This document shows, in pieces, positions 1-22,426 of a stretch of 64,000 nucleotides of DNA; the stretch's first letter is position 1; every line of letters starts with the position of its first letter. Under the pieces are notes generated by a model, which made no database searches, was not told the origin of the DNA, and saw only the letters and a program-made list of their open reading frames with translations. The position numbers and the translations under genes were made by a program. The DNA is from Monocercomonoides exilis PA203 (Eukaryota; Protista; Preaxostyla), in NCBI GenBank assembly GCA_001643675.2, contig LSRY02000016.1:992001-1056000 (forward strand), written 5' to 3'.

Positions 1-2060
1 CCAATGAATTGCACACTCTTCAAAACAAAATCAGATGCTCCATCATCCAAAACAAGATATATCCCTCCTCCCAATCCTTTGCTCCCATCTGCATTTGCAG
101 TTGCATCACACTCCGAAAACCCCACCTTTGCCTCTTGCTCAACCTCACTTCCATTGTTTGGAAGAGCTTCTGTGATATTGCCAACACTGAAGCTCGATCC
201 ACTTTTCATATGTATCCACAGCCCGCCTCCATTCCCTCTCTCGCTTTTGCACGAACTCATGCTTCCTTCTTCAAACGCAAAAGAGCAGCCATCTTCAAGT
301 GTGCATTCAATTGCTCCCCCGTTTTGATTTTTCCCCACAAAGTTGGACAGAGTGCAGCTGACAATTTCAACTTTCTTGGCACTTGTGGAAGATATCAAAT
401 GAGAGGATGCCATCTCTTCTGATTGAGTAATCGAAGAAATGATGCAATCTCTCATCAGAAGTGAAGCCTTCCCCTTCACTTCAAACAAGCCTGATGCACA
501 AGTTGTTCCAACTTCATTCATTTGAATGCTTGTTAATTCTGCTTCTGTGCTGCTTCCTGACAACGAGATCAATGGACTTCCACTCAACATCTTTGACGAA
601 ACAGAGAATGTATCGATTGTTAACATCCCTGAGTCAACAGACAAGAATAGAAATGCAATTTCAGATGAAGGATTTTGAATGGAAAGCGAACACTGAGACA
701 TAGTCAGTGATGATGATGATGACGAAATAAAAGTGGAATGTGAAAGAGAAGGAGGAAGAGAGAAGATAAGAGTTGACAAGACTGTTTCGACTCCAACTTT
801 CACCATTGCCGTATTTGCTCCTGCGGTGGCATCAGAAACTGTCCATCCACTTTGATCGTCTTTTCCTCGGATTTCATGTTTCTGTTCACCAAATACCAAT
901 TCATCGCTCATCATAATCATTCCATTAACAACAATTTTCTTTGGCCCTGCAAGCTGAGTGAGGGAGTGCTTCAAAGTCAAACAAGGGAATTGGACAATTC
1001 CGCAATGCGAGTGATTGGACGCCTCAGTATTACTCACATAAATCTCGGATGGAGGAGAAAGAAGATAGATGCACAGAGGAATGGCCACACTGTTGTTTCC
1101 ACCATCATATCCTTTCACTTTGTCAACGGAATCCGATGAGGCTGTGACACATGTGATTTTTTGTGACTTCGCGGTCACTTCCAGATTGGGTGAAATGGCA
1201 AAGATGTCATTTCCCCATTTTGCTGTGTTTGTGCCAAAGGAGGAAGAAATCAAGAAATCTGGGTTTTCAGTTGATAATTGAAGAAGGATTCCTCCGCCAA
1301 GTCCGTTGGATGCCGAGCAAAAGCAGCCATTAAACGACCCGTCTTTCACATTCACTTCATTTGCATCCCCAACACACAGCATTGTTGATCCTCCATTCTC
1401 TGAACTTGTGCTCCCGCATCCTTCAAATACACTTGAATTCAAATCAATATTTGCCATGCCATTGGATAACGACATCACTGCTGATCCGCTGGTTGTTCTT
1501 TCAATCCCATCAAAGTCACATTCCGAAAGTCTCAATGAAACAGCACTTGTTGAAGAAAGCGAAAGCAGTGAAACGGTTGAGACCATCCCTTTCCACTTCA
1601 CATGATCCATGCTCATCCTCCCATTTTGGATGCAAACCATTTCTGTGGAATAAGCTGTACCAGATTGAAGCGCGCTTCCAGCTGATATGTTCAGCCTGCT
1701 CACATCCATTTCTCCCTCGCCTGATATTTCGAACAGCCTTGTTCTGCAATTGTTCTGGTGTGTTGGGTCGTGTACAAGAGCAAGGTCACTGACAGACAAT
1801 GTGCCTGCTGAGACCGAAAAAAGAGACAAGTCAGCTGTTTCAAATTCTGTTTGCATCGTTGTGCTCGAATCACTTTGTCCACATATTGTGAATGCATTGA
1901 CACCACAATCCACACTGTGTGTTTCGACAATTGTTCCTGCCAATATTTCAATGTCTTTCACAACACCTGGAATCATCTGTGTCAGGCAATGGCTGACTGT
2001 GTTGCAGGGATGGCTTTCATTGATTCCACATGCAAATGCATCTCTTGCATTCTCCTGAGT
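1..2060. repeat. Left arm of a large inverted repeat (partner 8244-10303)
   Basis: Coordinates map as x+y=10304. ORF-track peptides are identical in mirrored frames (e.g. 9..422+ = 9882..10295-, 1361..1792+ = 8512..8943-, 1687..2058+ = 8246..8617-). First mismatch at 2061/8243. Confidence 0.95.
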
Positions 2061-3667
2061 TTGCTTCGATCCCACATATCTAATTCTTCCTCCTTCATTC
2101 AGAAGCCAATCGCTTTGATCAATAACACTTAAATAACTTGTACTAACTCTATTTAATGTATTCCTTGAAGAGCAACAGCTGATATCAATATTGTTTGATG
2201 TTGAATTATGCAAGACGATATCATGTCCACCTTTTAAGCAATTGTTATCGTGGAAAAAACAGAAATACAATAATATTCCGTTGTTAATTTCATTAATCAG
2301 TTGACTGACTGCTCCTCCTCCACACTTTGAACTGCAATGGAGAAAAAGGCAGTTTGAAATAATGACTTTATCGACGCTTCGCCAATGTTCAATTGCACCG
2401 CCTGTTCCATCAGTGGTGCTATTTGCACCACAATACACAAACATTGAATCCGTAATGCAATGTTTTTGCCTTTTTGTCATCGTTGGCCGAAAATTTATTG
2501 CTCCTCCATCGTTTCCTGAAGAACAATTTTGGAAAGAACAGCAATCAACAAGTGATTGAGTTTGAACATTCTCTGCCATTATTCCTCCTCCTCCACAATC
2601 CGTGCTCGCACGTGCTGTGCAGAGGACAAATATCGAATGTTTAACTGAACATTCAGCAATGTTATCAGCATAAATAGCACCACCTCTTGTCACAGAAGCG
2701 TGGCATCTTGTGAAAGATGAATTTTCAACTGTTAGTGAAGCCTCAGAATTCTCATGAGCAAATATTGCTCCTCCTTTTTCTTCTGTGCAGTCCGCCCATT
2801 CACAGTGTTTGAAGGATTGAGTTTCTGTTGTGTTCACTTTTTCTTTCAATTCATTATTATCAACTCGTGTCACAAACGAAAATGAGTTGTTTCTGAATAA
2901 ACACATTCGAGAACAGTCTTCATCACCAGAAAAGCAAGAATAGAAAATGTTGGAAGGGGTTGAGATAACAGCACAATTATCCATCAATTGTGAACAACAT
3001 GTGTGTTTTGTTTTATGGTTGTCCTTCGATTGAGAATTGGATGAGATATTGAAAAAGAAGCAATCACAAACATCCACACTTTGACACAACTCCGAATACA
3101 GAAAAAGAGATGATGATGAAACAACAAGATCTGAAAACACAGAATTCCGAAGAACAAGAGAGGATTTCTCACTTGATGTTTTTATAAGACTTTGAATGAT
3201 AGAATGTTCTTGAGGTGCAATACTAATATTATTCAAACAAAGAGACCCTCCTTGAAGCACAAACAAAGAAGATGACGAAGTTAAGAAAATACAATTTGTG
3301 AATTTCATAGAAGAATGTTTGTTAATTGTTGCGGGAGGAGAACTGAATGTCTTTAACACCAATGAAATCATTTCAACAGAGCTGTTCGAGGAGATAAAAA
3401 GTGAATTCACCATTGAGCATGCTTCTTTCAGAGATGCATTCACAGCTGGATTAACTTTCACAACTTCACGATCTTTGTGATCGAAATTTCTGCAGTGAAT
3501 AATGAAAAGAAATAGCACATGAAATAAATTTACAGATAAGAGAATTTTCCAAACTGGTATTTGTTCGTCACAAATTCCTTGTTCAAATTATTAAAAATCA
3601 AATTTTGTGCATATCGTGATGTTTGAAAAAAAATAAAAAAAAGAAACAACAACAAAGAATATCGCAT
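1..3667 (-). CDS. Giant receptor-like beta-helix (Pmp/pectin-lyase-like GGAI repeat) protein, paralogue A; 5' part only, runs off the window start
   Basis: Hand translation. ATG at 3667 gives signal-peptide-like MRYSLLLFLFFIFFQTSRYAQ. A 44-nt GTAAAT...CTGCAG intron at 3490-3533 joins it to a stop-free frame running to position 1 (CEWADCTEEKGGAIF, RGGAIY, GNDGGAI, FCFFHDN...WLLNEGGRIRYV), which then matches gene B. It is missing from the ORF track because it has no stop in the window. Confidence 0.85.
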
Positions 3668-4423
3668 AAATGGAAACAAAAAATAAGGCAGTTGTGTGAC
3701 TTGTGATCCAACCATTAATTTATAAAAAAGATGTTGTAAATTATTCTTTTTCAAAATTTCAACAATATAAAGTTGAATAGCATTAAAGAAAAAAGAAAGG
3801 AAAAAATCAACAATAAAAATAATTTCATTATTTAATTTGTTATCGCTTTTTTGGAAGAACATTTTGTTGGAACATTTTCGAAAATGAGAAAAATCAACAG
3901 AAAAAAATTGACAAATAAATGCAAATAATCGTTTGATATTCATAAATGAAAAATCCAAAAAAAAAAATTAAAAAGAAAGAAAATAATTTTTTTTAAAAAT
4001 TTTTATTGACAACTTGTTCCATTCATTTTATTTCATTTATGAACATCAAAAATTTCGTTTGACACAAATATTTAAGGAATTCAAATGAAAATGATAAGGA
4101 AAATCATTTTCGTTTTGATTATCCAATGGAAAACATGAAAACAACAATAATTTTTGAAACGCAAAAAATTGAGAAAAAATCAATGCACTTTTGAAATAAT
4201 AATTGGCATATGCACACTTGACAGCAATTTCTAATTCTTGCATATTTCGTTTGTTAATTGCTTATAAACATCATTTGTGATGTTTTGAGTTGTTAAAAAC
4301 ATGCGGAAGTTCATTAAAATATAATTTTAATTTTACAAAAATTATGAAAATGGGTCAAAATATTCTCGAAAAATAAAAAAAAAAACATAATAAAAAATCA
4401 AAATAAAATAAAAATGTTTATCT

Positions 4424-5495
4424 TTATGAGTTTTCTGAACACTCAGAGGCAGATAAACCATCGCCTGTGTCAATATTGTCGGTTTCACTTGTTTCGCTGT
4501 CATTAGAAATAAGTGAATCATCTAAATCATGTATTTCTTCTTCATTTTCTTCTGTTTCTTCATCTTCTTCAGCTTCTTCTATTTTCTTTTCTTTGTAGAA
4601 AATAATTTTTGATACAAATTCTTCAAATCTCACAATCTTTCTCTTATTGATCATCCAAAAAGCAAGTTGATCAGCAACATATTTTTCTCGAATTCCATAT
4701 GGAGGAAAAAATCTTCTCATATGGCTCCATAATCCTTCGATTGTATTTGTGCATGCGTGAGTTTCTTCATCATATAGTTTTCTCTTATGACACACTGTTA
4801 GATGATTGTATCCTAAACGAGAAAGAGATGAGTATGCCTACCATTCATCTGACATTATTGTTGAATGCGGTTGAATGTGCTTTTGAATGATAGGAATCAA
4901 CGTCGAAGCAGAACGGTCTGGTACAATCATGACAAAAAAATTTCTTGTTTCATCCATTTTATCTTTCTTTCGCTCCACCGCACCAAAGACCCACATTTGT
5001 CTCTTTCTTTTTCTTCTATGATATTTTATTCTCCTGAAAACACATTCATCTATTTCATCAATTATGTTTTCGCCTCCAAGAATAGTTTCATTCTGATTAA
5101 TGATGTCCATCGCGCAACACCTCATAACAGATGACCAATATGCCACAGAGTTATATGAATTCCCAACATTTCCGAGCAAAATTTTACACTAGCACCATTC
5201 CAAAAAATATGATAATTAACAAAATCACATTTATTGGTATTCTGCTACGATAAAATGACGTATTCTTGTATGCTGATTGCCTATTGCAACATTTTCTGCA
5301 AACCCACATCATCCTGCCAGAGTGACGCCGTAAATCCATTTCAATTCTGTGCCTTCTGCATTTTTGCTTGTTTTTGATAATTTTCCTAAATATCCATTTT
5401 TCAGATTTTTCCGAATTGAGAAACATTCTGAATAATTTGTTTGAACGTTTTCCAGGCAGAGCAAGTGAATCGTCTGAATCAGACACTTCTTCCAT
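4424..5495 (-). mobile_element. Merlin / IS1595 (ISXO2-like) DDE transposase, disrupted
   Basis: Motifs: N-terminal Zn-ribbon-like C..H...CxxC, EIDECVF, KYHRRK, WVFGAVER, VPDRSASTLIPII, TIMSDEW*AY, H.TVCH, TNTIEGLWS. In-frame TAG at 4838-4840 and frameshift(s) near 5160-5205. No TIRs found. Confidence 0.88.
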
Positions 5496-6617
5496 GAAAT
5501 TTTTGATTTTTTAAATGATCAAAAATCCCATTAATATGTGAAAACGATAAATTTCAAAAATCAAAAAATCATGGTTTCCTTTCATATTCAGTTCATGCTA
5601 TATACACTAAATAACTCACTTTTTATTTATAAACTGTTTTTTCATTGTTTTGAAAATTGCAGTTAAGTATGCATTTGCCGAATTTTTTTAGCAAATCGAA
5701 TTGTTGAACATGAAGTGATTTAAATGAAATTGCTTCGACTTATTTCAATAATTTTCAATGAAACTCAATCGAACGAAACAATATTTCATTTCCACTAATC
5801 TCGAATGTTCATTGACTTTTCATTAGTAAACATTCATTTCAAATTTATATCGAAGACATATTTTATGGTTTTTAATATTTTCTTGCTGTTTAATTAATTT
5901 TTTTTTAGTTTATTTTTGCATATATTTTGAATGGTTTGGTGCAAACAGTGATTTTTTTAAAAATAAGTGCATGAATTTTTCCAAAATTTTCCAAAATACA
6001 ATTATTTAAATTATGGGAACTTCTAAAAGTTATATTATTTTTTCTTGAAAATTATCAAAAGTTTTTTTATTTGTAAGTTTTTAATCAAAGTGAAGTGTCA
6101 GCTTTCGAATATTACATTTTTGGATTTTGATAACTTTCCAATTTTACTTGAATCGTCATTTGCTTGGTGTTATTCCATTTATTAAGAGATTATTTGATGC
6201 ATGCAACGCAAAAATAAAACAATTATGTATAATTTTAAAGAATAAACAATTCACACTATTTTTCGCTTTTATGGAAATTACAAACGCATGTTAAAGTTCT
6301 TTTGAGTGCAATTTTTGTGATGATCTTTTGAAAAGAAAATAGATATAGATACATTATTTAAACACACTTGACTCTTTCACTGTTATTTATTCGATTCTTT
6401 GAATTGATTTTTTAGATTTATTTTATTGAAATTTAAAATTTAATGCAAAATGAGAATTTTTTCTCCAACGAGAAAAAGAATTTGTGAGAAAAAAGCTTAT
6501 TTTGAAAAGCAAATGCTTTTTTATGTCAAAATATTGAAACATTGCATTTTCTTTATAAATGAAATAATAAACATCACAAAATACAAAAATTACTTTCTTT
6601 CGAACCATAATTCTTCA

Positions 6618-9600
6618 ATGATTGTTCTGTTCAATTTTGCACTTCTTTTGGCATTGTCAAAGACTGCAAATATCAAAAGCAACAATCAAATTTATGTAGG
6701 AAATGACTCTTCTCAATGTTTCAACATTCAGATAATTGAAGACACATTCAAAAAGAAAGGCAATTGCTTGTTAAATTATCACAAAAGCCACAAAGATGAA
6801 TTTTTAACAAACTATGGCAGCTTTGAAAAGCAGTATTCATTTCGAAGAAATGGATTCACTACACTTTTGTGCAAATGGACTATTTCAAATTCTTCCACAG
6901 TTGTCAGCAACATACTCTTTGAACAATTTTTTCATTCGAATCTCGTCTGTGCACTCGACAATTCAAATATTTGTATCTCTTCGTGTCAAGTCACAAAACC
7001 ATCAAGATTTGTCCCGTTGTTGAACATCCAAAGTTCATCATTCGTTGCACACAATTTTTCAATTGATATCAATCTTCTTCAAGAAAGTGTCGAATCAATT
7101 GGATATGTGAAAGGTGAAACTTCATTTTTGTTGATTGGTTCATCCGTTTTTCAGAATATTGTACTATGTGGAAGAAAAATGTTTGATATTGAAAGTTGTC
7201 ATTTGTTCTCATCTGAAAATTCAATTTTCAACAATATCACCAACGTTCATAACCAAATACATACAGGAAAAACTGATGGTCAGTTCAGCATGATTGAGGA
7301 AAGCATTATGGAAAGTTGTGTTGTTTTCGCTTGTGAAAATGCATTGGATGGAACAGTGATGAATGGATTGAAGAAATCAAATGAGTTGGTGTGCAGAAAC
7401 GTTTCGTTCTTGAATAACATCAACAAACTCATCAATTACGACAAACAAACAACAATTCATACCTCCAACACAATCAATATGAACAATTGCGAATGGATGG
7501 ACTGTACCTCCGCAACAAATGGAGGAGCCATTTGCATATCAGGAAACAGCGCTTCAACGCTGACTCTTTCATTGTGCTATTTCAGAAATGACACTGCACA
7601 AAGTGGAAGAGGAGGAGCAATATACACAAAATCAATCTCACAAATCTCAATCAAGCATTGTTTCTTTCTCGGGTGCCAAGCTCCAGATCAATCTTTCAAT
7701 GAAGCTGGAGGAGCAGTTTGTATCTTCAATCCGCAAACAACATACATATTTGAGAACAGCTCATTGAAAGATTGTTATGTTGGAAATGATGGAGGAGGCT
7801 TATCAATAGATAGAAAAGGAACTCAAATAAATGGGGATCAGATCCTTGATTGCTCATTCGTTAATTGCACAACTTCAAATGAATCAACACCAGTTGGAGG
7901 AGGAATTCAAATGTGGGATATGTCAATTTCTCCTCTCATTAGCAATTGCTTATTTACAAATAACTATGCCATGAATGGAGGAGGTGGACTCAGTTTGTAT
8001 GTCAATTATCAATACACTGAAAAAAACTTATTCTTTTGCTTTTTCCATAATAATGCGGGGGTTTATGGTGGTTGCGATGTTCTATTAGCAAATCAACAAG
8101 AAAATACAATCGATATATCGTGTCGATCAACTCGTCAAACTGGAATACGAGTGAGTCCAAACTTTGCCACAACTTCAATAACTGATCGAAGTGATTGGCT
8201 TCTGAATGAAGGAGGAAGGATCAGATATGTGGGATCAAAGCAGACTCAGGAGAATGCAAGAGATGCATTTGCATGTGGAATCAATGAAAGCCATCCCTGC
8301 AACACAGTCAGCCATTGCCTGACACAGATGATTCCAGGTGTTGTGAAAGACATTGAAATATTGGCAGGAACAATTGTCGAAACACACAGTGTGGATTGTG
8401 GTGTCAATGCATTCACAATATGTGGACAAAGTGATTCGAGCACAACGATGCAAACAGAATTTGAAACAGCTGACTTGTCTCTTTTTTCGGTCTCAGCAGG
8501 CACATTGTCTGTCAGTGACCTTGCTCTTGTACACGACCCAACACACCAGAACAATTGCAGAACAAGGCTGTTCGAAATATCAGGCGAGGGAGAAATGGAT
8601 GTGAGCAGGCTGAACATATCAGCTGGAAGCGCGCTTCAATCTGGTACAGCTTATTCCACAGAAATGGTTTGCATCCAAAATGGGAGGATGAGCATGGATC
8701 ATGTGAAGTGGAAAGGGATGGTCTCAACCGTTTCACTGCTTTCGCTTTCTTCAACAAGTGCTGTTTCATTGAGACTTTCGGAATGTGACTTTGATGGGAT
8801 TGAAAGAACAACCAGCGGATCAGCAGTGATGTCGTTATCCAATGGCATGGCAAATATTGATTTGAATTCAAGTGTATTTGAAGGATGCGGGAGCACAAGT
8901 TCAGAGAATGGAGGATCAACAATGCTGTGTGTTGGGGATGCAAATGAAGTGAATGTGAAAGACGGGTCGTTTAATGGCTGCTTTTGCTCGGCATCCAACG
9001 GACTTGGCGGAGGAATCCTTCTTCAATTATCAACTGAAAACCCAGATTTCTTGATTTCTTCCTCCTTTGGCACAAACACAGCAAAATGGGGAAATGACAT
9101 CTTTGCCATTTCACCCAATCTGGAAGTGACCGCGAAGTCACAAAAAATCACATGTGTCACAGCCTCATCGGATTCCGTTGACAAAGTGAAAGGATATGAT
9201 GGTGGAAACAACAGTGTGGCCATTCCTCTGTGCATCTATCTTCTTTCTCCTCCATCCGAGATTTATGTGAGTAATACTGAGGCGTCCAATCACTCGCATT
9301 GCGGAATTGTCCAATTCCCTTGTTTGACTTTGAAGCACTCCCTCACTCAGCTTGCAGGGCCAAAGAAAATTGTTGTTAATGGAATGATTATGATGAGCGA
9401 TGAATTGGTATTTGGTGAACAGAAACATGAAATCCGAGGAAAAGACGATCAAAGTGGATGGACAGTTTCTGATGCCACCGCAGGAGCAAATACGGCAATG
9501 GTGAAAGTTGGAGTCGAAACAGTCTTGTCAACTCTTATCTTCTCTCTTCCTCCTTCTCTTTCACATTCCACTTTTATTTCGTCATCATCATCATCACTGA

Positions 9601-12600
9601 CTATGTCTCAGTGTTCGCTTTCCATTCAAAATCCTTCATCTGAAATTGCATTTCTATTCTTGTCTGTTGACTCAGGGATGTTAACAATCGATACATTCTC
9701 TGTTTCGTCAAAGATGTTGAGTGGAAGTCCATTGATCTCGTTGTCAGGAAGCAGCACAGAAGCAGAATTAACAAGCATTCAAATGAATGAAGTTGGAACA
9801 ACTTGTGCATCAGGCTTGTTTGAAGTGAAGGGGAAGGCTTCACTTCTGATGAGAGATTGCATCATTTCTTCGATTACTCAATCAGAAGAGATGGCATCCT
9901 CTCATTTGATATCTTCCACAAGTGCCAAGAAAGTTGAAATTGTCAGCTGCACTCTGTCCAACTTTGTGGGGAAAAATCAAAACGGGGGAGCAATTGAATG
10001 CACACTTGAAGATGGCTGCTCTTTTGCGTTTGAAGAAGGAAGCATGAGTTCGTGCAAAAGCGAGAGAGGGAATGGAGGCGGGCTGTGGATACATATGAAA
10101 AGTGGATCGAGCTTCAGTGTTGGCAATATCACAGAAGCTCTTCCAAACAATGGAAGTGAGGTTGAGCAAGAGGCAAAGGTGGGGTTTTCGGAGTGTGATG
10201 CAACTGCAAATGCAGATGGGAGCAAAGGATTGGGAGGAGGGATATATCTTGTTTTGGATGATGGAGCATCTGATTTTGTTTTGAAGAGTGTGCAATTCAT
10301 TGGGTGCAAAGGAAGGAAAGGGAAAGATGTGTTTCTGGATGCTGATGATCTGGGTGCAGTGGCAAACACAACAACATTTTGCTTCGATGTTGAATTGAAT
10401 GACTTTGAAAAGTTGAACGGCTTTGAGCGCTCAACAGCAAATGAAGAGTTCGAAATACCGCTTGTTGTGTATCTGTGGAATAACTTCACAGAGCCATGCC
10501 ATGTGGGTGGGCAAGAGGCTCATGACTTCAGTGGTTGTGGATTCGAGCAAGTTCCATGTGATACGATTACAAAAGCAGCAAGTTTGAGGTTTTCAGGCAA
10601 AAACAAGTCAATCAAGCTGAATTCACCGTTCTTTTTGGAGAAGAATTGAACATGAAGACAGAGGAATGGAGTATGAGCGGAGAAGGAAATGAAACGAATT
10701 ATGGGATAGCTGGTGATATTTCTGGTGCTCAAAGTGGAATATTCGAGTCACACTGTCCAGTATCATTCATTGAAGTGGTGCTTTCACTCTCAGAAAGAAT
10801 TGGATCTTATGGAAGTATTTTCCATTGTGTTTCCAGCACATTGACAATTCAGAACTGTGGAATTGTTGCATCGAAAAACGAATTGCGAGTTTCCTGTGTG
10901 AAAGTGGAAGGAGGCGAGGTTGTGATGAACAATGTATTTGGGAATGCAATCGGATGGCAGAAGAGTGCGATTATTGTTGATGGGAGTGGTGGAGAAACAC
11001 CTTCGATCGAAATTGTGGAAGGCAACTTTTCAGGAAATGGGCAGCAAAGCGGATGCTTGGTTGAAAGCAGAAATGTAAGGTATTTGAACATGACGAAATG
11101 CGAAGCAATATCTTTTGTTCGAAGAACTGGAAATGGAGGCAGTATAAGTGTTGATAACAGCAACATAGAAAACGAAAACACACAAATTAATATCGAAGGG
11201 AATGTTTTTGATGGATGCTCTGTGATGGCTGATGGAAGCAGAGGAGGTGCCATTGATGCTCAGATAAAATGGAATACTCAATTGAACATCATTTCATGTA
11301 CTTTCACAAGATGCACTGCCCCTGACGAAGAAGGCAAGATTGGGCTTGGCGGGGGAATGGCACTGACATTGGTTGATGGCGATCCTTCATTTTCAATATC
11401 ATCCCCTGTTTTTGATAACAGCAAGCCAAATGTTGCAAAATACGGAAATGACCTGTTTGTTGAATCATCAAACTTGACAAAGAGCATCACCAACGCCTCG
11501 CTTCCATTTGTGCTCGAGCACATGGCAGATATTTCGTTGGATTCATTGAGCGGCTTTGATAAAAGTGACACAACAAATGCCATTCCACTGATCTATTTCT
11601 GGCGAACATTTGGATCAGAGATATTTATTGGGGGCAATGGAAAGGATGTGTGTATTTGTGGACTTTCTGATTATCCTTGCCTGTCAATTGATTATTCTTT
11701 GGATCGGCTGCTTGAAGGAAATGAAAGGAATATTAACATCATTGGAAAAGGAATTCTCAAAAAAAGTGTTGATCTTGGTGATATTTCAATAAGCTCAAAT
11801 AATACAGATATGTGCTCACTTGAGTGTCGCTCTTCTATTGAAGGAGCGGAGGACGAAGCAATGAATGTTCAAGGCATCTCATATTTCGAATTGATAAGAT
11901 TCGTTCTGCCATCTTCATTCGCCACTGGTGTAAACAGTTTGATTCATGTCAGCTCCAGAGAAGGATCGTTGACTCTGAAAGACTGTTCATTCGCAAAAAA
12001 TGAAGAAAGAGGAGAAGAAGACATGATTAACTTTGGCTTGATTAAAGCGGATGCAGGAAGTGTTGTTTTCGCATTTGTGGCAATACAGTCGCTTTCCTTT
12101 TCCTGCGACATCGCATCAATAGCATCTGCTGCATCCTTGGCATTCAGAAACTTGACAATGAAAAACATCCAGCTGGAAGGCGGAAGCGGGTTGTATGTTG
12201 CAAGGGCTTTAACTGGAAATGAAAATGTGAATGCTGAAGCCGATGAAAGTGTTGTGGTGGAGTGGAGCACACTTGAAGAAGTGACCCAGAGTGCAGCTGG
12301 CAACATCGCAATGTTCCGAAGCACAGGCATTGACCCAACAAAAATGGTCATCCGCAATACAACAATCAAAAAATGTGGTGGTTCTGGATGCAAAAATGGA
12401 GGGGCTGCTTTGTTCAGACTGAACGAAGGAGGGCGTTTTGACTGCTTGTTTTCTTCAATCACCGACTGCTTCTGCTCATCAACTGGAAGGGGTGGAGGCT
12501 TGTTTTTGGAATGCACATCTGCGGCTGCCGAGCCAGCAGCATTTGTGCTGTCGAACATCACGTTCAAGGACAATACTGCATATCGGGGAAGAGATGTGTA

Positions 12601-15600
12601 TGTGAAATGCCGCTCGATAGAAGCACAGATCGCAGATGGGCAGTTTTTGCTGGACTTCAGAGCCCCATTTGTGAAAGACCTCGCAATATGGGGATGCACC
12701 TCAGACATGTATCTGGACGAAGAAGATCTGCTGAAGAGAATTGTGAAGTACCAGAGCGAGACGGTGTTTGTGTCTTCGGCCGGGGACAATCACGAGGACA
12801 GCAAGCAGTGCGGAGGGCTGGATGGGCCATGCAGCACGCTGAGCGAAGGGCTGCTGCACGTCATTCCGTCATTGTTCTCCCAGCTGCTGATCTCCAGCCG
12901 CACCGCCATCTTGAGCAGATGCAATGTGCTGAATGTCACCATCCGCTCGCTTGAATCGCCTTCGCCGGCGCAGGTGTTCCTCAACTCAACAATCCCATGT
13001 GGCAGCAGCATTATCACAACCTCAGAGAAAGTCCGGATCGAGAGCTTGTCGTTCTCTGTTGGCTCCTCCTTTTCGTTTTCAGGAGGATCACTCATCAGTG
13101 AGACAAATGGGCAGCTTTATCTTTCGTCAGTCCTTTTTGCATCTGAAGTGCCCTCAAACAGCATCCATCCCATTGCCTTCAACTCAGCTCTCCTGAGCGT
13201 TGAAAGCGGACTTCTGCTCATCGATAATTGCACCGTATTGGAAATTTCATTTGAGCAGCCAGTGTTCCGGCTGACTGGCAGCAGCAAGGTGTCTTTGGCA
13301 AAGGTGGATGTGAAGCAGGTTGAGTTGTCGTCCAATCTGTTTGAAGTTGGAGAGTGTGTAAGTGTGGTGATTGATGATGCAGCGGTGGATGGAGTGAAGT
13401 CTCGCAATGGCAGTGTCATTTCCATTTGCGAAGATATGTCGGGAGTTGTTTCCTTTGGCAGTTCTTCCATCAGAAACTTCAGTCGTGACTCTTTTGGTGC
13501 ATGCTTCCTTTCGGCATCTTCGCCTTCTGCCCGGATAAACCTGTCAAACTGCTCGTGCTCGGATTGTGTGTCGTTGTCGAAAAAAGGGAGCATTGTGGAT
13601 GTCAGCAGTGCACTTGTCATTTCTATGCAAATGTGCGAGCTTGTGGGGAGGCAAACAATTTCCAGCAGCGAAGAGAGTGTCTGCAAATGGAATGGATCGC
13701 TCATCAATTTGTCACATGCAGCAGCACTGATGAAGGATGTGACAATATCGAATTCGTCATCAGGAGGATTGTCGTTGGCAGCGGGCAGCATGACAATCGA
13801 GAAAGGCGAGTTTTATGACAACAGCCCCTCGATGCCGAAATACCCATCACTCCGCCGGAACGTCTTCTGCTGCGATTCGGCTTCGTTGGCAATTGACAGC
13901 TTGAAAGGCGGGGATGGCGTGAAGGACAACACTTCGTTGTGGATCACGAGCGAAGACTGCAGCTTGAAGGGTGCTGCACAGGGGCGACCCTCTCCGTTTT
14001 TCATTCCTCATCTGGAATCAGCAAGTCTGGCTGAATCTGGGAGCGAGGCCAATATCAAATTCATAGGATCGCTTTTCTTGCCATGCGATCTATCTTTCAA
14101 GTTGATATGCACAATCAACGATGTGGAGTTGGTTGAGAGGTATCCATTTGACGAAAATAGCTTTGTTTCTGAAACAGAAGTTGTTGGAACAATTCCGTCA
14201 GCAAAGTTAACATCAGATGCCGATGGGTCAGAACTCTCCACAGCAATTGAGTTTGGAAAATCTTCAGCTTCGACAAAATCATTCATTCTGAAGAACAGGA
14301 GTGTAACCCAAACAAGTGGAGATGAAAAGATTGTTGAAGGTGGAAAGAAAGAAAAATCATTTTGGCCAATTATTGTGATTGTGTGTGTTGTATTTGTTGT
14401 GCTTCTGCTTGCAATTGTTGTTATTCTGGCTGTTCGGTGGAAGAAGGTGAAGAATGAAGCAGAAGATCTGAGAGAGATTGTGAACGATAACATCAGAAAG
14501 GATCCAAAGGCGTTTGAGATGGTGACGATGGAGATGTCGCCTGAGGAGCAGTGGAGGAGAGCAGAAAGAGAGGCCGAGAAAAAGAATGAGGAGAGGATCA
14601 AGAAGAGAATATATGAGACGAATATGCAACATTCAGAATCATCGGAGCATCTTCTCTCTGAGAGCGGATCGACTGAATACATTCTTGGAAAAGATTCAGA
14701 CAAGATTCCTCAATGGGCACTGGAGAAAGATGAGGAAGAAGAGAAAGATACAAGAAAGAGAACGCCTTCACCTTCCATCTCTTCCACATCCACAACTGAT
14801 TCAGATTCAACATTTGTTCGAGGAGAGGATCTGTGTCCCACCACTTCATCAATGTCGAACTTGGTGGATGCAATGGCCTGCTCATCCCCTCATGAGAAAT
14901 TGATTGTGGATCTGAGGGATTCGCTGTTCATGCTGCTTCATGGAAGGAATGAGAAGAAAGAGATGGCGATTGGGAGTTTGAAGGAGAGGGAGCAGACAGT
15001 TGCCCAGATCCTGTTCTGGGTGGCCAATCTTGCGCTCCACTCCTTTGACGAAATGGAAAATGAGCTTTCCTCTTTGGCCAATCTCAGTCCCCACATTGTG
15101 CTGTTCTCAGAGCACATGGTCATCTGCATTGCCCTCCACTCCGACTGCTCGTCAGACTCTGACACTTCCTCCATCTCTTCAGCCTCCACCATGGTCACAT
15201 CTTCCTCTGATGTTTCTGTGAAGAGCGAGAGATTCACAAAATCACCACCTCCTTCATCCGCCTTTGAGGATGAGGATGACAACAGAAAAGAGTGCATGAG
15301 GTGGAAGGCGCCAGAGCTGCTGATCAACAAGAAGCTTGGAGCAACAAAGGAGTCGGTTGCCTTCTCGATTGGGATGATGTTGTGGGAGTGCCTTACGCTC
15401 CAGATCCCATTTGGGGAGTACGAGGCAGAGGTGGCAGGACAGAAGATTGTGAATGGAGAACGACCTATCATGGGAATTGCTGAAAAGAACCCATTTTCTG
15501 GCTGCGTTCTGTCGTGCCTGGACAGCAATGCCCCAGCAAGGCCAACACTTGTCGGCCTCAAGCGCGAGTTCATCCAGCACTTTCCTGCAGGCGCAGCTGT

Positions 15601-15709
15601 GCTCACGATGTCTGATGCAATTGGCTACGCTTATTCGAGCAGCAGCGGCAGTCGGCGCAAGGCTTCTGGGGCAGAGTCCGAAGGGAGCGGCTCTGGAAGT
15701 ATTTTATGA
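6618..15709 (+). CDS. Giant receptor-like beta-helix protein with TM helix and pseudokinase tail, paralogue B (~3030 aa if joined); split by a 1-nt frameshift at 10632-10636
   Basis: ORFs 6450..10649 and 10646..15709 overlap, and one extra T in the T5 run joins them (NSPFFFGEELNMKTEEWSM, aligning with APFVLSEEVAVPEGEWRM of paralogue C). Signal-like start MIVLFNFALLLALS at 6618, GGAI/FxxC repeats, TM WPIIVIVCVVFVVLLLAIVVILAV, kinase C-lobe-like RWKAPE...FSIGMMLWE...RPT. Confidence 0.85.
8244..10303. repeat. Right arm of the large inverted repeat (partner 1-2060)
   Basis: Reverse complement of window 1-2060. The repeat may extend further, beyond the window start. Confidence 0.95.
14318..15350 (+). 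repeat. ~1 kb near-identical TM + cytoplasmic segment shared with 57666-58698
   Basis: Direct repeat at offset 43348. Long identical nucleotide runs from GGAGATGAAA (GDE.IVEGG) to GCAACAAAGGAG (ATKES). Confidence 0.93.
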
Positions 15710-17016
15710 GAACTGCATTTCAGCAAAAGGATTGCAAAGTGCAAATGGAATCTGGGGCATTTATCAGGAACAGTAATGACATTTGCATTTGCAATCTGTA
15801 CTTATGCGCCATTAATAGGGGGGTGAATGGTTGTGTTTCTGCTTTTGTTGGGCGTGGCAAGAGGCGTTTTGCACCATTTTCAAAGCAAAAATGGAACTTT
15901 TCTTTTTTCATGTTTATTTGTTCGTTTTCTGTTTATAATTCTTATGACTTGAAAGCCCGCACCAGCAAAAGCATGGAACATTTCTCTGTGGCGTTATAAA
16001 TAGAATATGTGCTGCTCTCCGAGAAATTTTTTAAGAATAAAATATTATTTTCAAAGATATTGAAAATTCATCAAATTTCTATCAAACTTTTGTTGCTTTA
16101 CAAGAATATGAAAAGCAGTGCTTTTATAATCTTCAACGCAGGATATTTCCTTTTCGAGCAAATATAATAATTTGTTATTGTCAAAGCATATGTTCAATTT
16201 TCAATTCAGAGAAGCTCGGATTCGATGGCGTCGCTTAAAACCAAGATCTCAAGAAAAAATATTTCTTCTTTATTTATGAAATATTGCTGGTTAAAGGATG
16301 CAACATGAATTGTTAAAAAATGCCATTAAAGCTGCTTTTCAATAAATATTCTGAAAAAAATCTGATTATGATGTCATATTAATAACAATCATTTGCGCAC
16401 TCATTTTTGTTTTGAATGTAATTCATTCAATTTGGTTTTTGAAATTATTGTTAAAATATTTCTCTGACAAAAAGCCTTATATACCAAAACATATAGCTAA
16501 ACAAAGAAAAATTTAAGGGCTTGCTATTATTCATCGAGTAATTTTGCAAAACTATCAATCAAGCAAACAAAATCAAAATTGAAAACATCAAAATATTTTA
16601 TGGGTTTGTTCAATAAAGATGAACTTCAAAATTATCGATTTCTCACAAAAGATATTTCATATGCGCTTGCATATTTTTGTTTCAATAATAATAAACTTTT
16701 TCATAACACATAAATAAAGTTTTTGTTTGATATTCAGCTTTTCAAGAAATTAAATCATAGAAGTCTTTTAATCCTCTCTTGCCTGCATTTGCTGTTGAGT
16801 GTGTAATATGAATAATGATGTCAATTAAAATTTAAGTATATATATATATATATATTTAAAAAAATGGTGAATTCTCCTATTTTAAAAATAGTTTCAATAT
16901 TTTGAAAAACATCAATCAAAATTACAAAAAATAAAAAAAAATTTTTTTTGAATAAATAATATCACAAGGCACATGGATTAAGGAATAACCTTTTTTTTTA
17001 ACAAAAACAAAAATAA

Positions 17017-20000
17017 TCAAAAGTTACTGTGGTAATTAATAACAACTGGCTGTTCTTTTTTCCACACAGCAAACAGCACGTGCTGTATGTGATGGGACAG
17101 ATTCAAAGGAATGCCATTGCAAGAAAGCGTCAGCGAGGCATGAGACAAAGGAAAAGGGAGAGAGTGTACATGCTTATGAAATGGCACCGGGATGGTGGAA
17201 TAAGAAAACGGAGAATAAGAAGAAGAATAAGAAGATGAAGATGATGATGTTATTGAAGTGCTTTTTGAATTTATCGTGCTGGAAGGCGAGAAAAATGCAT
17301 TTCGTTTTTTCCTTTGCGAGCTCATTTCCCCTTCTCCCTCCGCTCTTCCATCGTTCGCTTTATTCGCCTGTGCGCTCTGCTCAAAAGCAGGCTGTGCTTC
17401 ATTCAGCAGGAGAAAGTGATGGAACAGGAATGAATGCAGCGTCGCCACAAGAAGATGCTCATCAACTGTGAATGTGAAGGTGCCAATGTCCGGAAAGCAC
17501 GACTCAGAATCGCCTAGAAGAAACGAGGAATCTTCTTGCCTTGATTCTTGCTCTGATGTGGAAGAAGGAGAAGGAGAAAGAGAAGGAGAAGGAGAAAGAG
17601 AAGGTGAAGGTGAAGGGGTTGAAGGAAGCAGATGTGAATGCGCCAGAGGAGAAATGGTGGACATGAGCGACGTCGATATCTGAATGCGCTGAGAGTCTGA
17701 GTCATCGCCATTGAAACCAGCAGCAGCAGCAGAAGAAGAAGAAGCTCCATTTTCAGAGGAAACAGACTCACCTTCTGTCTGAATCGCCTCCAGCATGTTC
17801 TCCTTCCGCTCTCTTTCTCTCGTCCACACACGCACTTTCTCTGGCACCGACGGCGAGTGCTTCAGAACCACACACACAGGAAACCGCTGCGTCTGGTGCT
17901 CGCCTTTGAGGAGGCTGAGCGCAATCCAGCGGGGAATGAGCCTGGGAAGCGGCAGAAGAAGATGGTCGATCAGGAAGTTCGGGTTTCTTTGCGAAACGTA
18001 TGAAGAAGAAGACGTGTATGAGAAGATGGAAGGCGGGATCAGAGCTTGCGAAGAGCTGTGTGCGGATGCAGGGGCAAAGGAGTACTGGAGCGAGGAAGAA
18101 GAGAAGAACGGGGTGAGCAGCTGGGCTGGCGGGGAAGCCATCAGCGTTGGGTTGCAGTAAGGGAAAGGGGCGTGGCTCAAGGTGATGTTGGAGTAGCCAA
18201 CAGCAGGCGAAGCACAGGTGAAGGAGAAAGAGGACAAGTCATCGTCAGGAATGACCGAGGCAAAGCGGTGTGAGGTTGTGGTGGACGGGGAGGGGAGAGC
18301 AAATGGGACGTCTGCTATTTCTCGCAGGGTGGAGCGGAAGAGGATGCGGTTCTTGTGGTCGAAGGCGCTGATGAGTGTGGAGGGTGGGAATATCTGGTGG
18401 TTTGTGATTGGGATGAGGAAAAAAAAAAAGAATAATTAGGTTAGTGAAATGTTTAGTTTCAGTATTTTATTTTTATTTTTAGGAAGAGAGAAGAAGAATT
18501 ATTTTTGCATAAACATAAAAAAAAAAAAATGATAATGAATTAATAAAAAAAGACGCAAAGGACATACAAAGTTTTGCAACGTCTGAGAAAGAGATGTGTT
18601 TGATAATTCAGCATTTTCAGTTGATTTTCTTTGGCGTGAATGTGAAGTCACAAATTCCTTCCACCAAACAGGCAATGCTGAAAGATCAATGGAAAAGACA
18701 TAAAATGGAATAAGCAAGTATTCCATCATTCAATCAGAATTCACAAGAATTGCGCAAAAAAACAAAGAAAATATTTGAATAATAATATAAAAACCAATTG
18801 CAATAATGATGATGATGACAATTAAAATAAAATAAAAAACACACATTTTTCTTTCTCTTCCATCGGATTCCATGTTTCAAACAGGTTCATCAAACATTCT
18901 TCCCCCAAATTCATCAGAACGCAATCATCTTCTTCAATATCATCATCTTCATCCTTTTCATCATCATCTTCTTCTTCTTCTTCTTCCTCTTCTCCATCAA
19001 CATCTTGATTGCCATTGCCATATTCTTCTCCTTCACTCAATTTCTTCCCTCCTTCTAAATTATTCCTTCCTTCAACATTTCTGTTCCTGTTCCTGTTCTT
19101 TTGATCATCCTCTGCAACCCCATCATCATCGCAGTTACCTCCACTTTCCTTCCTCCCTTTCAACCCTCCCTTTCTCTTTCTCTCTCTTCTTTCCCCTTTT
19201 GAATGAAGAAGCTCAGAACTCGAATGCTCTGTTGAAGATGTGATATTTTGCTCATCAGATGATGCTGGTGCATTAACAGCAGCGTCGTTGTGATCGAAGT
19301 ATTGATATTCGCTTTCAGAGCGAGGGAAGATGGGGAATGCGCAGCGGAAACACTCGGGGAGTTCTAAGGTGATGGTGAGGCGCTAAAGTTAAAAGAAATG
19401 ACATATAAAGGTGAAAAGTATTATTTGAAAGGGAATAAATAGAAAACAAAGGAAAGATGAGGAAAAGATAATATTTATATATGAATTAATAATAAATATA
19501 ATAATAAAAGATAGAATTCAAAAGCAGTAAAATCACATTTATTCTTTCCTCAAAGATATTTTGCTCATGTCACACTCACACATACACATACACACACACA
19601 CCCCAGTTCTCGTATCTGCTGTGAACCACTTGTGTCTGTAGATATTGTTCTGATAGTGTTTCCACAGCGGTCCTTCCACTTTCGGGAACAGAAACTTCGC
19701 CAGCTCGCTGATTGGCATCCGGCGCCTGTGCAACTTCCTCCAAATGCGCTGCAGCTGAGCCAAGTCAACTTCCACTTCGTCGTCTCTCTTCCCGTTTTTC
19801 ACTGCACTCTGCAGAGATAACTCTGGGCGCAGCTCAAAAGCGGTTTGGGGGTGGCGGGAGGATCTGTACAGGGAAGAGGCAGCAGAAATAGAAGAAGAAT
19901 TAGCAGCATTTGCTGTATTGCGGGCAGAAGACGACAAAGACATAGACAAAGGAGATCGAGAGCGGGAGCGAGAATTGGATTGAGAATGTGAATGCGAATG

Positions 20001-22426
20001 CGAATGAGAACGAGAGCGAGAATGAGATTTGGATTTGGATTGGGAATGGGAACGGGAATGCGAACGCAGAGTGGAGAGAGAAGAAGGAGCCGGGGACGAA
20101 GACAGCGACGATGACGAGGCAGACAGCGGAGATGGCACCATCGTCATTGACGACGATGGCCCAGCAGCGATTGCTCGGAATGGCCTGTTCACTTGCTCGT
20201 CCCTCGCTGCTTCCTCCATCGCATCGTCAAACAGCCCATCTGCTTTCCCCTCTGCAATCACCTGGTCCTTCAGCTTCTCAGCTGACGTCTTCTTCCTCTT
20301 CCACACTTTCACCTCTTTCCCTGTCACTGCATTCACCACCTTCACATGGCTCACCCCGCTTGCTCCATCGCCTCCCACCACGACTGCCACGTGCTCTTCA
20401 TCGGGAAGAGTCACATGCTGCTTCAAGGGAGCATCTGGGCAGACAATGCGCAGAGGGTTCTTGAAGCGCGGCTGGTTGCGGGAGGTGAAGGTGGGCTGAG
20501 AGAGAGAAAGAGAAGATTCAATAAATAAATAAACATTTAAAAGGAAAAAAAAAATATCATGGAATTTAATAAATTGAAAAAAGGTTTTTGTTCAACATTT
20601 TTCCAAACGCATTTCCAACACAACAAAAATCCTCAAAAATAAGAATCACATTCAAAACAACCCTACTCCATTCGCAAAACAAAAAAAAAAAAAAATATTA
20701 ATTTTTTCTTTCTTTCTTCTTCTTCTTGATCAACACTCATCCCATGAACACACCCACAATTCAATCGTCCCCACTGATGTTGCCACCACCAGCAGGTCTT
20801 CCTTCTTTCCGTGCATCACACGCGGCACCAGCGCCAAGCTCAGCACAGACACCTCTTCTTCATCATCAGCCATATCACCCACATCATCAATATCCTCGTT
20901 TTCTGTCCTCCACGTGTCTGACTCTTCACTTTGATCAGCATTTTTCATTCGTTCTTTTTCTCTTTCTTTTTCTTTCTCTTTCTCTTTTCCATTTCTGTTA
21001 TCTTTTTCCTCATTCTCCTTCTCCTTCTTCTCTCCTTCTTCATTCTCCCCCTTCAACTCCACTTCCGAACGTGAATCACTTCTTTCTCTTCCCTCTCTTC
21101 TTGCACTTCTGCTTCTATGCGCCTCCCTCTTCTGCTGTCTCTGCTGCCTCTGCAGCTCCTTCCTCCTCCTCCTCTGCTCCTTCATCCTCCTTCTCCTGTC
21201 CTGCTTCTTCAGCTGCTTCATAATCTCCACCATTCTCTTTCTCTTCGGCCGGAGCGAATGCACTTTGAAGATGGGGAAGGCCAGCATGTGGTGTTGCAGC
21301 ACAATTGGCGCGGAAAGCGGCGGGCGAATGACAATCGAACGGGACTTCTTCGACGCGGACTCGGCGGGGCGGCTGGTGAGGCGATCGACTGGAATGGAAG
21401 AGGAAGAGGAAGAAGAGGAAGAATTGACAGAAGAGGAGGAAGAGGAAGATGCTGTTGTTGGGCGATATCCTTCTAAAGTGACAGTGTTCTGTGTTTGTGG
21501 AGATGAAGTGGATGAAGCTGCTGAAGAGGAGGAAGAGGAAGAAAGAGGAGGGAAAGCAGAAGTCTGAGACACAGCTGGTATTTGAGACTGAATTGCTGAA
21601 GATGAAGCAGAAGGAAATAGATTTGCCTCGGAAGTTGTTGTTAAAGAAGCATTTGCTGCATTTGCTGCATCTGTCGCTGTCTGAAGAGCATACTGATTTC
21701 CGCCAGTAACATTCGCATTCTGTGAAATGGTGTCAGCTGCCTTTGGCTGTTTGAATATAGTGAACGGCGACATCGATGAATGAGACAGTTTTGAGGAGGA
21801 AGACTTTGAAGAAGAGGAAGAAGAAGAAGAGGACGATGTGGTGAGGATCGATTCCATGTCTGAGTGCAGCAGCGACGGCTTCATTTCTCTTTCAAACCTC
21901 TTCTCCTCCACCAGCCTCTGCCTCTCCGCCCTCTCCTCGTCGCTCTCGTCCTCCCACATCTTCCCTGTCTCTTCGTCGTCAAACGCTGTGAGTCTCACTG
22001 CTCCGCTTTTGTGTCCTGTCCATATCCGCCGTGTGACCTCGTCCGCGCATATGCACCAGATCGGGTCAGGCTTCGCACTCGGAGCAGAAAACCCAGCCGA
22101 CCCCAGGTGCTGCAGCTGCTGGATCTTTTTGTCTTCCTCGCGCCGCTTGTTCCGCGCTCGCACCTGCTCCCGCTTTTCGCGCCGGCGCCGCTCTCTTTCC
22201 TTCTGCCGCTCAGCCCCGTCTGTTCGTTTTCTGGACGGTTTTTTGCCTGGCGAGCTTCCGTCCTCCTCTTCTTCCTCGTCGAAGTCGTCGTCTTCCAGCG
22301 CGTCTTCGGCGTATCCGTCGTCGTCGTCGTCCACATCTTCAACGGTGAACGGAATGCACACGATGCACTTGTACTTTTCGGTGCTCCAAATACGCAAACA
22401 TCCATCGCTGCATCCAGTTAGAAGCT

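Follow-up and report, generated by a model that had tools for sequence, protein, structure and literature searches.

The stretch of DNA considered here, referred to as the window, comprises 64,000 nucleotides of the genome of the protist Monocercomonoides exilis PA203 (G000:C10:992001-1056000, in a genome of 82.3 Mb and 101 contigs). Its left flank, C10:972001-992000, was added to follow one repeat arm beyond the window, and negative positions refer to this flank. At its left end lies a palindrome of 30.8 kb in total, made of two 12.4-kb inverted arms and a 6,061-bp spacer, in which two giant receptor genes, A1 on the minus strand and B1 on the plus strand, stand head to head. The N-terminal domains of the two receptors, hereafter the heads, differ from each other and are encoded in the spacer; the remainder, hereafter the bodies, is encoded in the arms and is nearly identical. 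An original prediction, made from the window alone, had regarded this arrangement as a candidate invertible or gene-conversion cassette for variable receptors. The features of the locus, in window coordinates, are as follows.

1-2121, minus strand: inner 2.1 kb of arm A, which is the proximal body of gene A1; a further 10.3 kb of the arm lie left of the window, out to C10:981718.
2061-2121, minus strand: edge zone of arm A, with six transitions relative to arm B; an equivalent zone of at most 100 nt is found in all four gene pairs described below.
2122-3489, minus strand: exon 2 part of head A, an N-terminal beta-strand-repeat domain of the main-family type.
3490-3533, minus strand: intron of A1, 44 nt, GT..AG, kept in the A-type genes of the other pairs (A2, A3 and A4).
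3534-3667, minus strand: exon 1 of A1, with the start codon at 3667 and the signal peptide MRYSLLLFLFFIFF...
4205-5685, no strand assigned: non-autonomous DNA transposon of 1.48 kb between the two heads, with terminal inverted repeats of about 26 bp (GGCA.ATGCA.ACTT...).
6618-8182, plus strand: head B, with the signal peptide MIVLFNFALLLALS from 6618, then the N-terminal domain of a small divergent subfamily.
8183-8243, plus strand: arm-B counterpart of the edge zone 2061-2121, its junction being spanned by a short-read contig.
8244-18085, plus strand: clean part of arm B, 9.85 kb, encoding the body with five CG..PC-headed modules, the transmembrane helix and a kinase C-lobe-like tail.
10632, plus strand: run of five T in B (T5) against six in A (T6), at the B1 frameshift; the open frames of B are 6450-10649 and 10646-15709.
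2.4 kb after the stop codon ending at 15706, plus strand: 3' flank inside the clean part of arm B.
18086-20514, plus strand: outer, older part of arm B, with about 2.8 % substitutions and microsatellite indels, Ser-rich frames on the minus strand and a GA-rich run at its end.

Gene A1 is intact, with an open frame of 2,997 codons from window position 3587 to -5403 and a reading frame that holds across the 44-nt intron. On the plus strand, B1 begins with its signal peptide at 6618 and reads to 15706 save for one frameshift at 10632, the sole cause of which is the T5/T6 difference. One RNA-library contig, covering 10320-10680, is longer by a single letter, in agreement with the intact T6 form, and a second one matches part of head B (7134-7285). 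The encoded receptors are laid out as a signal peptide, a head, five modules each headed by a CG..PC motif, one transmembrane helix and a cytoplasmic tail. Indeed, a single strong hydrophobic helix at about residues 2552-2576 is followed by RWKK and by a tail of about 420 residues, which is the arrangement of a type-I membrane protein. This tail matches PF07714 at an E-value of 6e-6 over the C-lobe only (profile positions 160-257 of 258), and the best protein matches, 120 out of 120, are M. exilis MONOS_ proteins, most of them with PF07714. Judged by their sequences, A1 and B1 are assigned to the giant receptor-like 'protein tyrosine kinase' family of M. exilis, a receptor family which is among the largest gene families of this mitochondrion-less organism (PMC8767320).

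The heads of A1 and B1 share 31.5 % protein identity over 387 residues, in line with the common scaffold that the original prediction had recognised in them. Head A displays about 50 % amino acid identity to more than 80 family members and forms a clade with the main-family heads; head B displays 43-46 % identity to about nine genes and about 29 % to the main family. When modelled with AlphaFold, head B consists of short strand triplets, with a predicted local distance difference test (pLDDT) score of 75, and a fold search with this model returned weak matches only, all of them to right-handed beta-helix proteins (E 1e-4, TM-score 0.2-0.3), which is suggestive of a beta-solenoid-like fold. A Pfam search of the heads and proximal body gave nothing significant, the best hit being the Chlamydia PMP repeat at an E-value of 0.1. 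The palindrome bodies resemble those of the two subfamilies about equally (45-61 % versus 40-56 % amino acid identity).

The in-window repeat search returned arms at 1-2121 and 8183-10303, with 6,061 nt between them, and nothing more of the repeat was visible to the original prediction, since arm A runs past the window edge. Followed leftwards, arm A ends at C10:981718, and the full arms, C10:981718-994121 and C10:1000183-1012514, are 98.67 % identical over 12,414 alignment columns (window 2121 to -10282 against 8183 to 20514). A base-by-base check established that 1-2060 is perfectly complementary to 8244-10303, as had been claimed. The short zone of about six transitions reported next to it was also recovered, with six mismatches at 2061, 2067, 2082, 2085, 2112 and 2116, all of them transitions and five of the six synonymous; past 2121, identity between the arms drops abruptly to random level. 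Away from the spacer, the perfect stretch belongs to a clean tract of 9.85 kb (2060 to -7784 against 8244-18085), with zero substitutions and, as its sole differences, three homopolymer indels of 1 nt each. In their outer 2.4 kb, the arms differ by about 2.8 % substitutions and many microsatellite indels, and they run 4.8 kb beyond the receptor gene, into sequence found in none of the other three pairs. At the inner end, a short-read contig from a 2016 DNA run (X1; 7965-8236) spans the junction between head B and the arm with zero differences. The break falls at the boundary between head and body, where the original prediction had placed it: the junction reads ...(Q/R)SDWLLNEGGRIRYV..., and the A and B proteins are identical from SDWLL on.

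The spacer holds both heads, including the start codon and signal peptide of each, the intergenic region and the 1.48-kb transposon, and no spacer open frame of at least 150 amino acids other than the heads was found. At least 17 dispersed copies of the transposon, 80-92 % identical, occur in the genome, and its presence in the spacer reflects a later insertion, because an empty site survives in a sister locus (pair 2 below) at C10:1383350/1.

The same pair of an A-type and a B-type gene is found at three more loci of the genome, and the comparison of the four pairs carries most of the argument that follows.

Pair 1: the window locus, head-to-head.
Pair 2: C10:1374184-1391954, head-to-head.
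Pair 3: C51:156780-183575, head-to-head.
Pair 4: C10:1437670-1454927, tail-to-tail.

Each pair combines one A-type head, one B-type head and a shared body. Within pairs 1 to 4, the bodies are 99.9, 98.9, 99.9 and 99.86 % identical, against 82-94 % between pairs. Across pairs, the A heads are 83-93 % alike and the B heads 85-93 %, and no nucleotide similarity between A and B heads was seen in this four-pair comparison. The number of synonymous substitutions per synonymous site (dS) is accordingly 0.008-0.014 within pairs and 0.12-0.50 between pairs, the values for B3 being unreliable owing to a frameshift. When the eight genes were aligned over the junction, the break was located at the same homologous nucleotide in all of them, with type-specific substitutions upstream and pair-specific substitutions downstream. 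Maximum-likelihood trees show the same partition. In the head tree, from which the frameshifted A2 head was left out, A heads and B heads are each monophyletic (support 99) and stand on opposite sides of the split between main family and B subfamily (support 100). In the body tree, the bodies of each pair are monophyletic (support 96-100) and all eight form one clade (support 99). Heads thus group by type and bodies by locus, which argues for concerted evolution via arm-to-arm gene conversion.

In all four pairs, substitutions between the two arms are limited to the first 60-100 nt or so beside the head, except that pairs 1 and 2 also have distal patches, one of which, in the arms of pair 2, is 9 % diverged. 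In pair 4, the junction is the outer end of the arm, yet identity stops at the same place. The ratio of nonsynonymous to synonymous substitution rates (dN/dS) is 0.20-0.28 in heads and 0.27-0.39 in bodies. The heads are under purifying selection and therefore not hypervariable, and the head-versus-body comparison that had been suggested along with the original prediction yields no higher ratio for the heads than for the bodies. The clean tracts of all pairs carry one to four single-base homopolymer indels per pair and no substitutions (in the window, at 10632, 15903 and 16507). These indels, that at 10632 included, break the reading frames of B1, A3, B3 and A4 and are probably long-read homopolymer errors which polishing with short reads failed to remove from duplicated sequence, so that all four may be intact genes. 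A2, the head of which contains two in-frame TAA codons, looks genuinely broken.

We propose, with a probability of about 0.8, that an old head-to-head gene pair has had its bodies kept alike by recurrent gene conversion between the arms, while the heads were spared. That conversion homogenises the bodies was already part of the original prediction, and this part is borne out by the grouping of bodies by locus and of heads by type and by the breakpoint common to the four pairs. The ancestral A/B gene pair would be old, with three or more duplications behind it, and at each of the resulting loci the inverted arms would undergo non-reciprocal homologous recombination with each other, which would overwrite the bodies and never the heads. 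Conversion would run through the body and halt at the head/body junction for want of nucleotide homology beyond it; the fact that pair 4 stops at this junction though it is tail-to-tail supports a boundary set by homology. The last 60-100 nt or so beside the heterology would rarely be included in conversion tracts, and the edge zone may gather differences because it is seldom converted. As for the extension of the pair-1 arms past the gene, a copy event that overran the gene end is a reasonable guess.

Several observations weigh against this interpretation or limit its reach. No transfer event was directly observed, a single strain being available, and pair 1, considered by itself, would look no different had it arisen through one recent copying of a long stretch. 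In pair 1, moreover, the arms differ by 2.8 % over their outer 2.4 kb, and conversion thus spares part of the arm. No GC-biased signal was detected in the bodies: according to polarised substitutions, their equilibrium GC content is 0.38, versus a current value of 0.43, and the equilibrium in heads is 0.38-0.47. The perfect identity of the clean tract, 100 % to the letter, may also be overstated, as polishing could erase rare arm-specific variants; the PA203 assembly derives from Nanopore reads with an N50 of 8.9 kb and was then polished, with the help of short reads, by Nanopolish and ten Pilon rounds (PMC8767320). Finally, the read data consist of Logan contigs, which carry no depth, copy-number or orientation information and in which most variant letters derive from paralogues. 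Two possible additions to the scheme were considered and rejected. GC-biased conversion was suggested by a GC content at third codon positions that is higher in bodies than in heads, but no excess of weak-to-strong changes was present among the polarised substitutions. The view of the outer 2.4 kb as copies of a dispersed transposon that bridged conversion was dismissed, as this stretch exists only in pair 1 except for simple repeats of about 80 nt.

Exchange between arms may also have been reciprocal at times. The 3' flank of A2 matches that of B4 (92.6 % over 257 nt), and the 3' flank of B2 matches that of A4 (85.6 % over 132 nt). The linkage between heads and 3' flanks is therefore swapped between pairs 2 and 4, which requires one or more reciprocal exchanges within the bodies. 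This points to one past crossover between arms, evidenced in these sister pairs and not in the window pair, the outer flanks of which are shared with none of the other pairs. The 743-bp spacer of pair 4 (C10:1445842-1446584) contains the 3' flanks of both genes, with their linkage swapped relative to pair 2 and about 330 nt of unassigned sequence between them. Occasional crossovers between the arms would flip the spacer and leave the proteins unaffected. The original prediction had proposed that such a crossover inverts the spacer and swaps heads between the two bodies: the crossover itself is plausible in view of pairs 2 and 4, but it would yield no new protein, because each head travels with its promoter in the spacer and would meet an identical body whichever way the spacer is turned. 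The idea of a switch that generates novel receptors thus finds no support.

Other explanations of the palindrome were weighed against recurrent conversion. That each locus underwent just one, recent event of inverted copying, in which for example fold-back or break-induced replication copied the body of one gene over its neighbour, appears improbable, even though some event of this kind is needed for the pair-1 arms to reach 4.8 kb past the gene into unshared sequence, and although a diverged outer 2.4 kb followed by a clean 9.85 kb fits one old and then one recent event. At the scale of the four loci, this explanation needs independent recent events at the same nucleotide and with the same two old head types. 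Nor does the centre of the palindrome show a small inverted repeat or a transposon on which a fold-back could have pivoted: it is a 6-kb spacer with anciently diverged heads, 31.5 % alike and shared by four loci, in which the transposon came later. Copying a body over an existing homologous body is, besides, gene conversion in effect. Still less probable is an artefact of assembly or polishing, whereby arms that are in reality less alike or mis-joined would owe their identity to a consensus of multi-mapped reads. The read N50 of 8.9 kb is indeed shorter than the 9.85-kb clean tract, the assembly underwent ten Pilon rounds (PMC8767320), and 1-nt indels without substitutions, typical of an unpolished long-read consensus, are found in all clean tracts. 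Such an artefact would nevertheless have to account for two different heads joined to the same body at four loci, for levels of arm identity that vary from 98.9 to 99.9 %, and for the survival of diverged stretches within arms, namely the outer 2.4 kb of pair 1 and the 9 % patch of pair 2. The 2016-run contig, possibly from the same sample as the assembly, also crosses the head-B junction without a difference.

The remaining explanation, a programmed invertible cassette in which regulated inversion of the spacer swaps the heads and so varies the receptor repertoire, is the one to which we attach the least credence. Shufflons, known from bacteria and plasmids, are DNA switches that invert by site-specific recombination, and the resemblance lies in a segment between inverted repeats that could exchange one coding end for another: long inverted arms do flank a segment carrying two alternative heads, one historical flip is suggested by the sister pairs, and head B is matched by an RNA-library contig (7134-7285). 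At this locus, however, neither a recombinase gene nor a short crossover site was seen: no recombinase domain was found among the open reading frames of the arms, the spacer has no frame of at least 150 amino acids besides the heads, and the repeats are 12-kb homologous arms rather than short sites. The layout also differs from that of a shufflon: promoters and variable 5' ends are carried by the segment itself, and the invariant parts stand on either side of it, in two copies. With start codons and signal peptides in the spacer and the same bodies on either side, a flip alters no protein. Furthermore, the heads fall into just two types, each preserved at all four loci and subject to purifying selection. 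The shufflon-like, antigenic-variation or ligand-diversification system put forward in the original prediction is thus not upheld, given the two conserved head types, their dN/dS of 0.20-0.28 and the failure to see a recombinase in the arms or the spacer.

Arm-to-arm gene conversion, the preferred reading, is a known process, of which this locus is a clear example, notable for an arm boundary that is precise to the domain and for four paralogous replicates in one genome. The closest parallel for the arms is provided by the human Y palindromes P1-P8, whose arms are reported to be kept more than 99.9 % alike through arm-to-arm gene conversion, with rare inversions (PMC3723533, PMC8600007). In both cases, long arms enclose a unique spacer, identity is far above that expected from age, tracts extend over several kilobases and an occasional crossover inverts the spacer. 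Unlike the human palindromes, in which identity is described there as arm-wide, the M. exilis palindrome has an inner boundary that cuts the gene at a domain junction. It also differs by its single-celled metamonad host, by its four paralogous copies and by the lack of a detected GC bias, a GC-biased signal being reported for one human Y palindrome (PMC3723533).

In Caenorhabditis, divergent or convergent pairs of homologous genes form long, near-perfect inverted repeats that have kept their structure better than their sequence (Zhao et al. 2007, PMC1803023). Head-to-head and tail-to-tail arrangements are likewise both found in M. exilis, and in both cases the repeat is kept while its sequence drifts between lineages, which implies active maintenance. 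The nematode repeats are reported to include complete intergenic sequences, whereas those of M. exilis exclude the 5' third of the genes and the intergenic region, and the nematode comparison is between species, that of M. exilis being between paralogous loci in one genome. Another metamonad, Giardia muris, has seven identical inverted pairs of variant-specific surface protein (VSP) genes, head-to-head or tail-to-tail, in a family with signs of recombination or gene conversion (PMC7641422). It shares with M. exilis a large family of surface proteins, inverted identical pairs and segmental exchange throughout the family (PMC7641422). The VSP pairs are, however, reported as identical over the gene and belong to an antigenic-variation family, whereas the M. 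exilis heads differ within a pair and are conserved by type, and no link of these heads to variation was found.

The junction is also visible beyond the four pairs. Throughout the family, amino acid similarity climbs from about 30 % to about 70 % at the junction motif SxWL.N..GR.R (window 2121/8183). The motif is contained in just 16 of the 120 annotated family models, too small a number for surveying breakpoints, and these 16 show the same step. Family heads are 28-52 % identical at the amino acid level, with saturated dS; the first 380 residues of the bodies are 64-75 % identical, with a dS of about 0.8-0.9, whichever subfamilies are compared. The four pairs share their breakpoint by descent, and it therefore does not represent four independent hits of a hotspot. 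Because body dS is about 0.8-0.9 where head dS is saturated, bodies seem to share a younger history than heads family-wide, and this drop hints at a wider exchange of bodies. A bolder extension of this idea, in which the junction would be a family-wide recombination boundary, with bodies in concert across loci, heads reassorted, palindromic pairs serving as the sites and flips ongoing in cultures, seems to us unlikely. If true, it would endow this receptor family of several hundred members with a combinatorial repertoire of sensors, driven by homology, on a common signalling stalk.

The four pairs show that inverted arms can stay free of substitutions over 5-10 kb while the copies of the palindrome drift 6-18 % apart. 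Part of the architecture of this gene family, among the largest in M. exilis, is thereby explained; the assembly paper uses neither 'palindrome' nor 'inverted repeat' (PMC8767320). It also has practical consequences for annotation, in that frameshifts in such arms are probably long-read errors, gene models need care and the assembled orientation of the spacer is not to be trusted. More generally, it lowers the expectation that pairs with a variable head and a constant body serve antigenic variation.

Some further features of the region deserve mention. Ser-rich, GC-rich open frames of 406 and 295 amino acids lie on the minus strand at window positions 17017-18237 and 19539-20426 and are mirrored in arm A; a Pfam search with them gave no significant match. 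Should they constitute a gene, it would be duplicated by the palindrome as well. A third receptor gene of the window (open reading frame 50835-59066, 2,743 amino acids) shares with the palindrome genes a 1,130-nt tract at 94.8 % identity (14318-15447 against 57666-58795), which covers the transmembrane helix and the tail, and has no nucleotide similarity to them outside this tract. The tract looks like the product of ectopic conversion between distant members of the family.

Two other places in the genome resemble parts of the palindrome. On contig C50, two convergent heads of the B subfamily, at 510097-511389 on the plus strand and 528786-530078 on the minus strand, match head B with equal scores (45 % amino acid identity) and lie about 17 kb apart; they probably belong to a tail-to-tail palindrome whose arms include the heads. 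On C10, inverted matches at 1102129-1102701 (minus strand) and 1121467-1122038 (plus strand), about 19 kb apart, are 91 % identical to the first 570 nt or so after the receptor stop codon, and may mark a further palindrome with the same 3' end.

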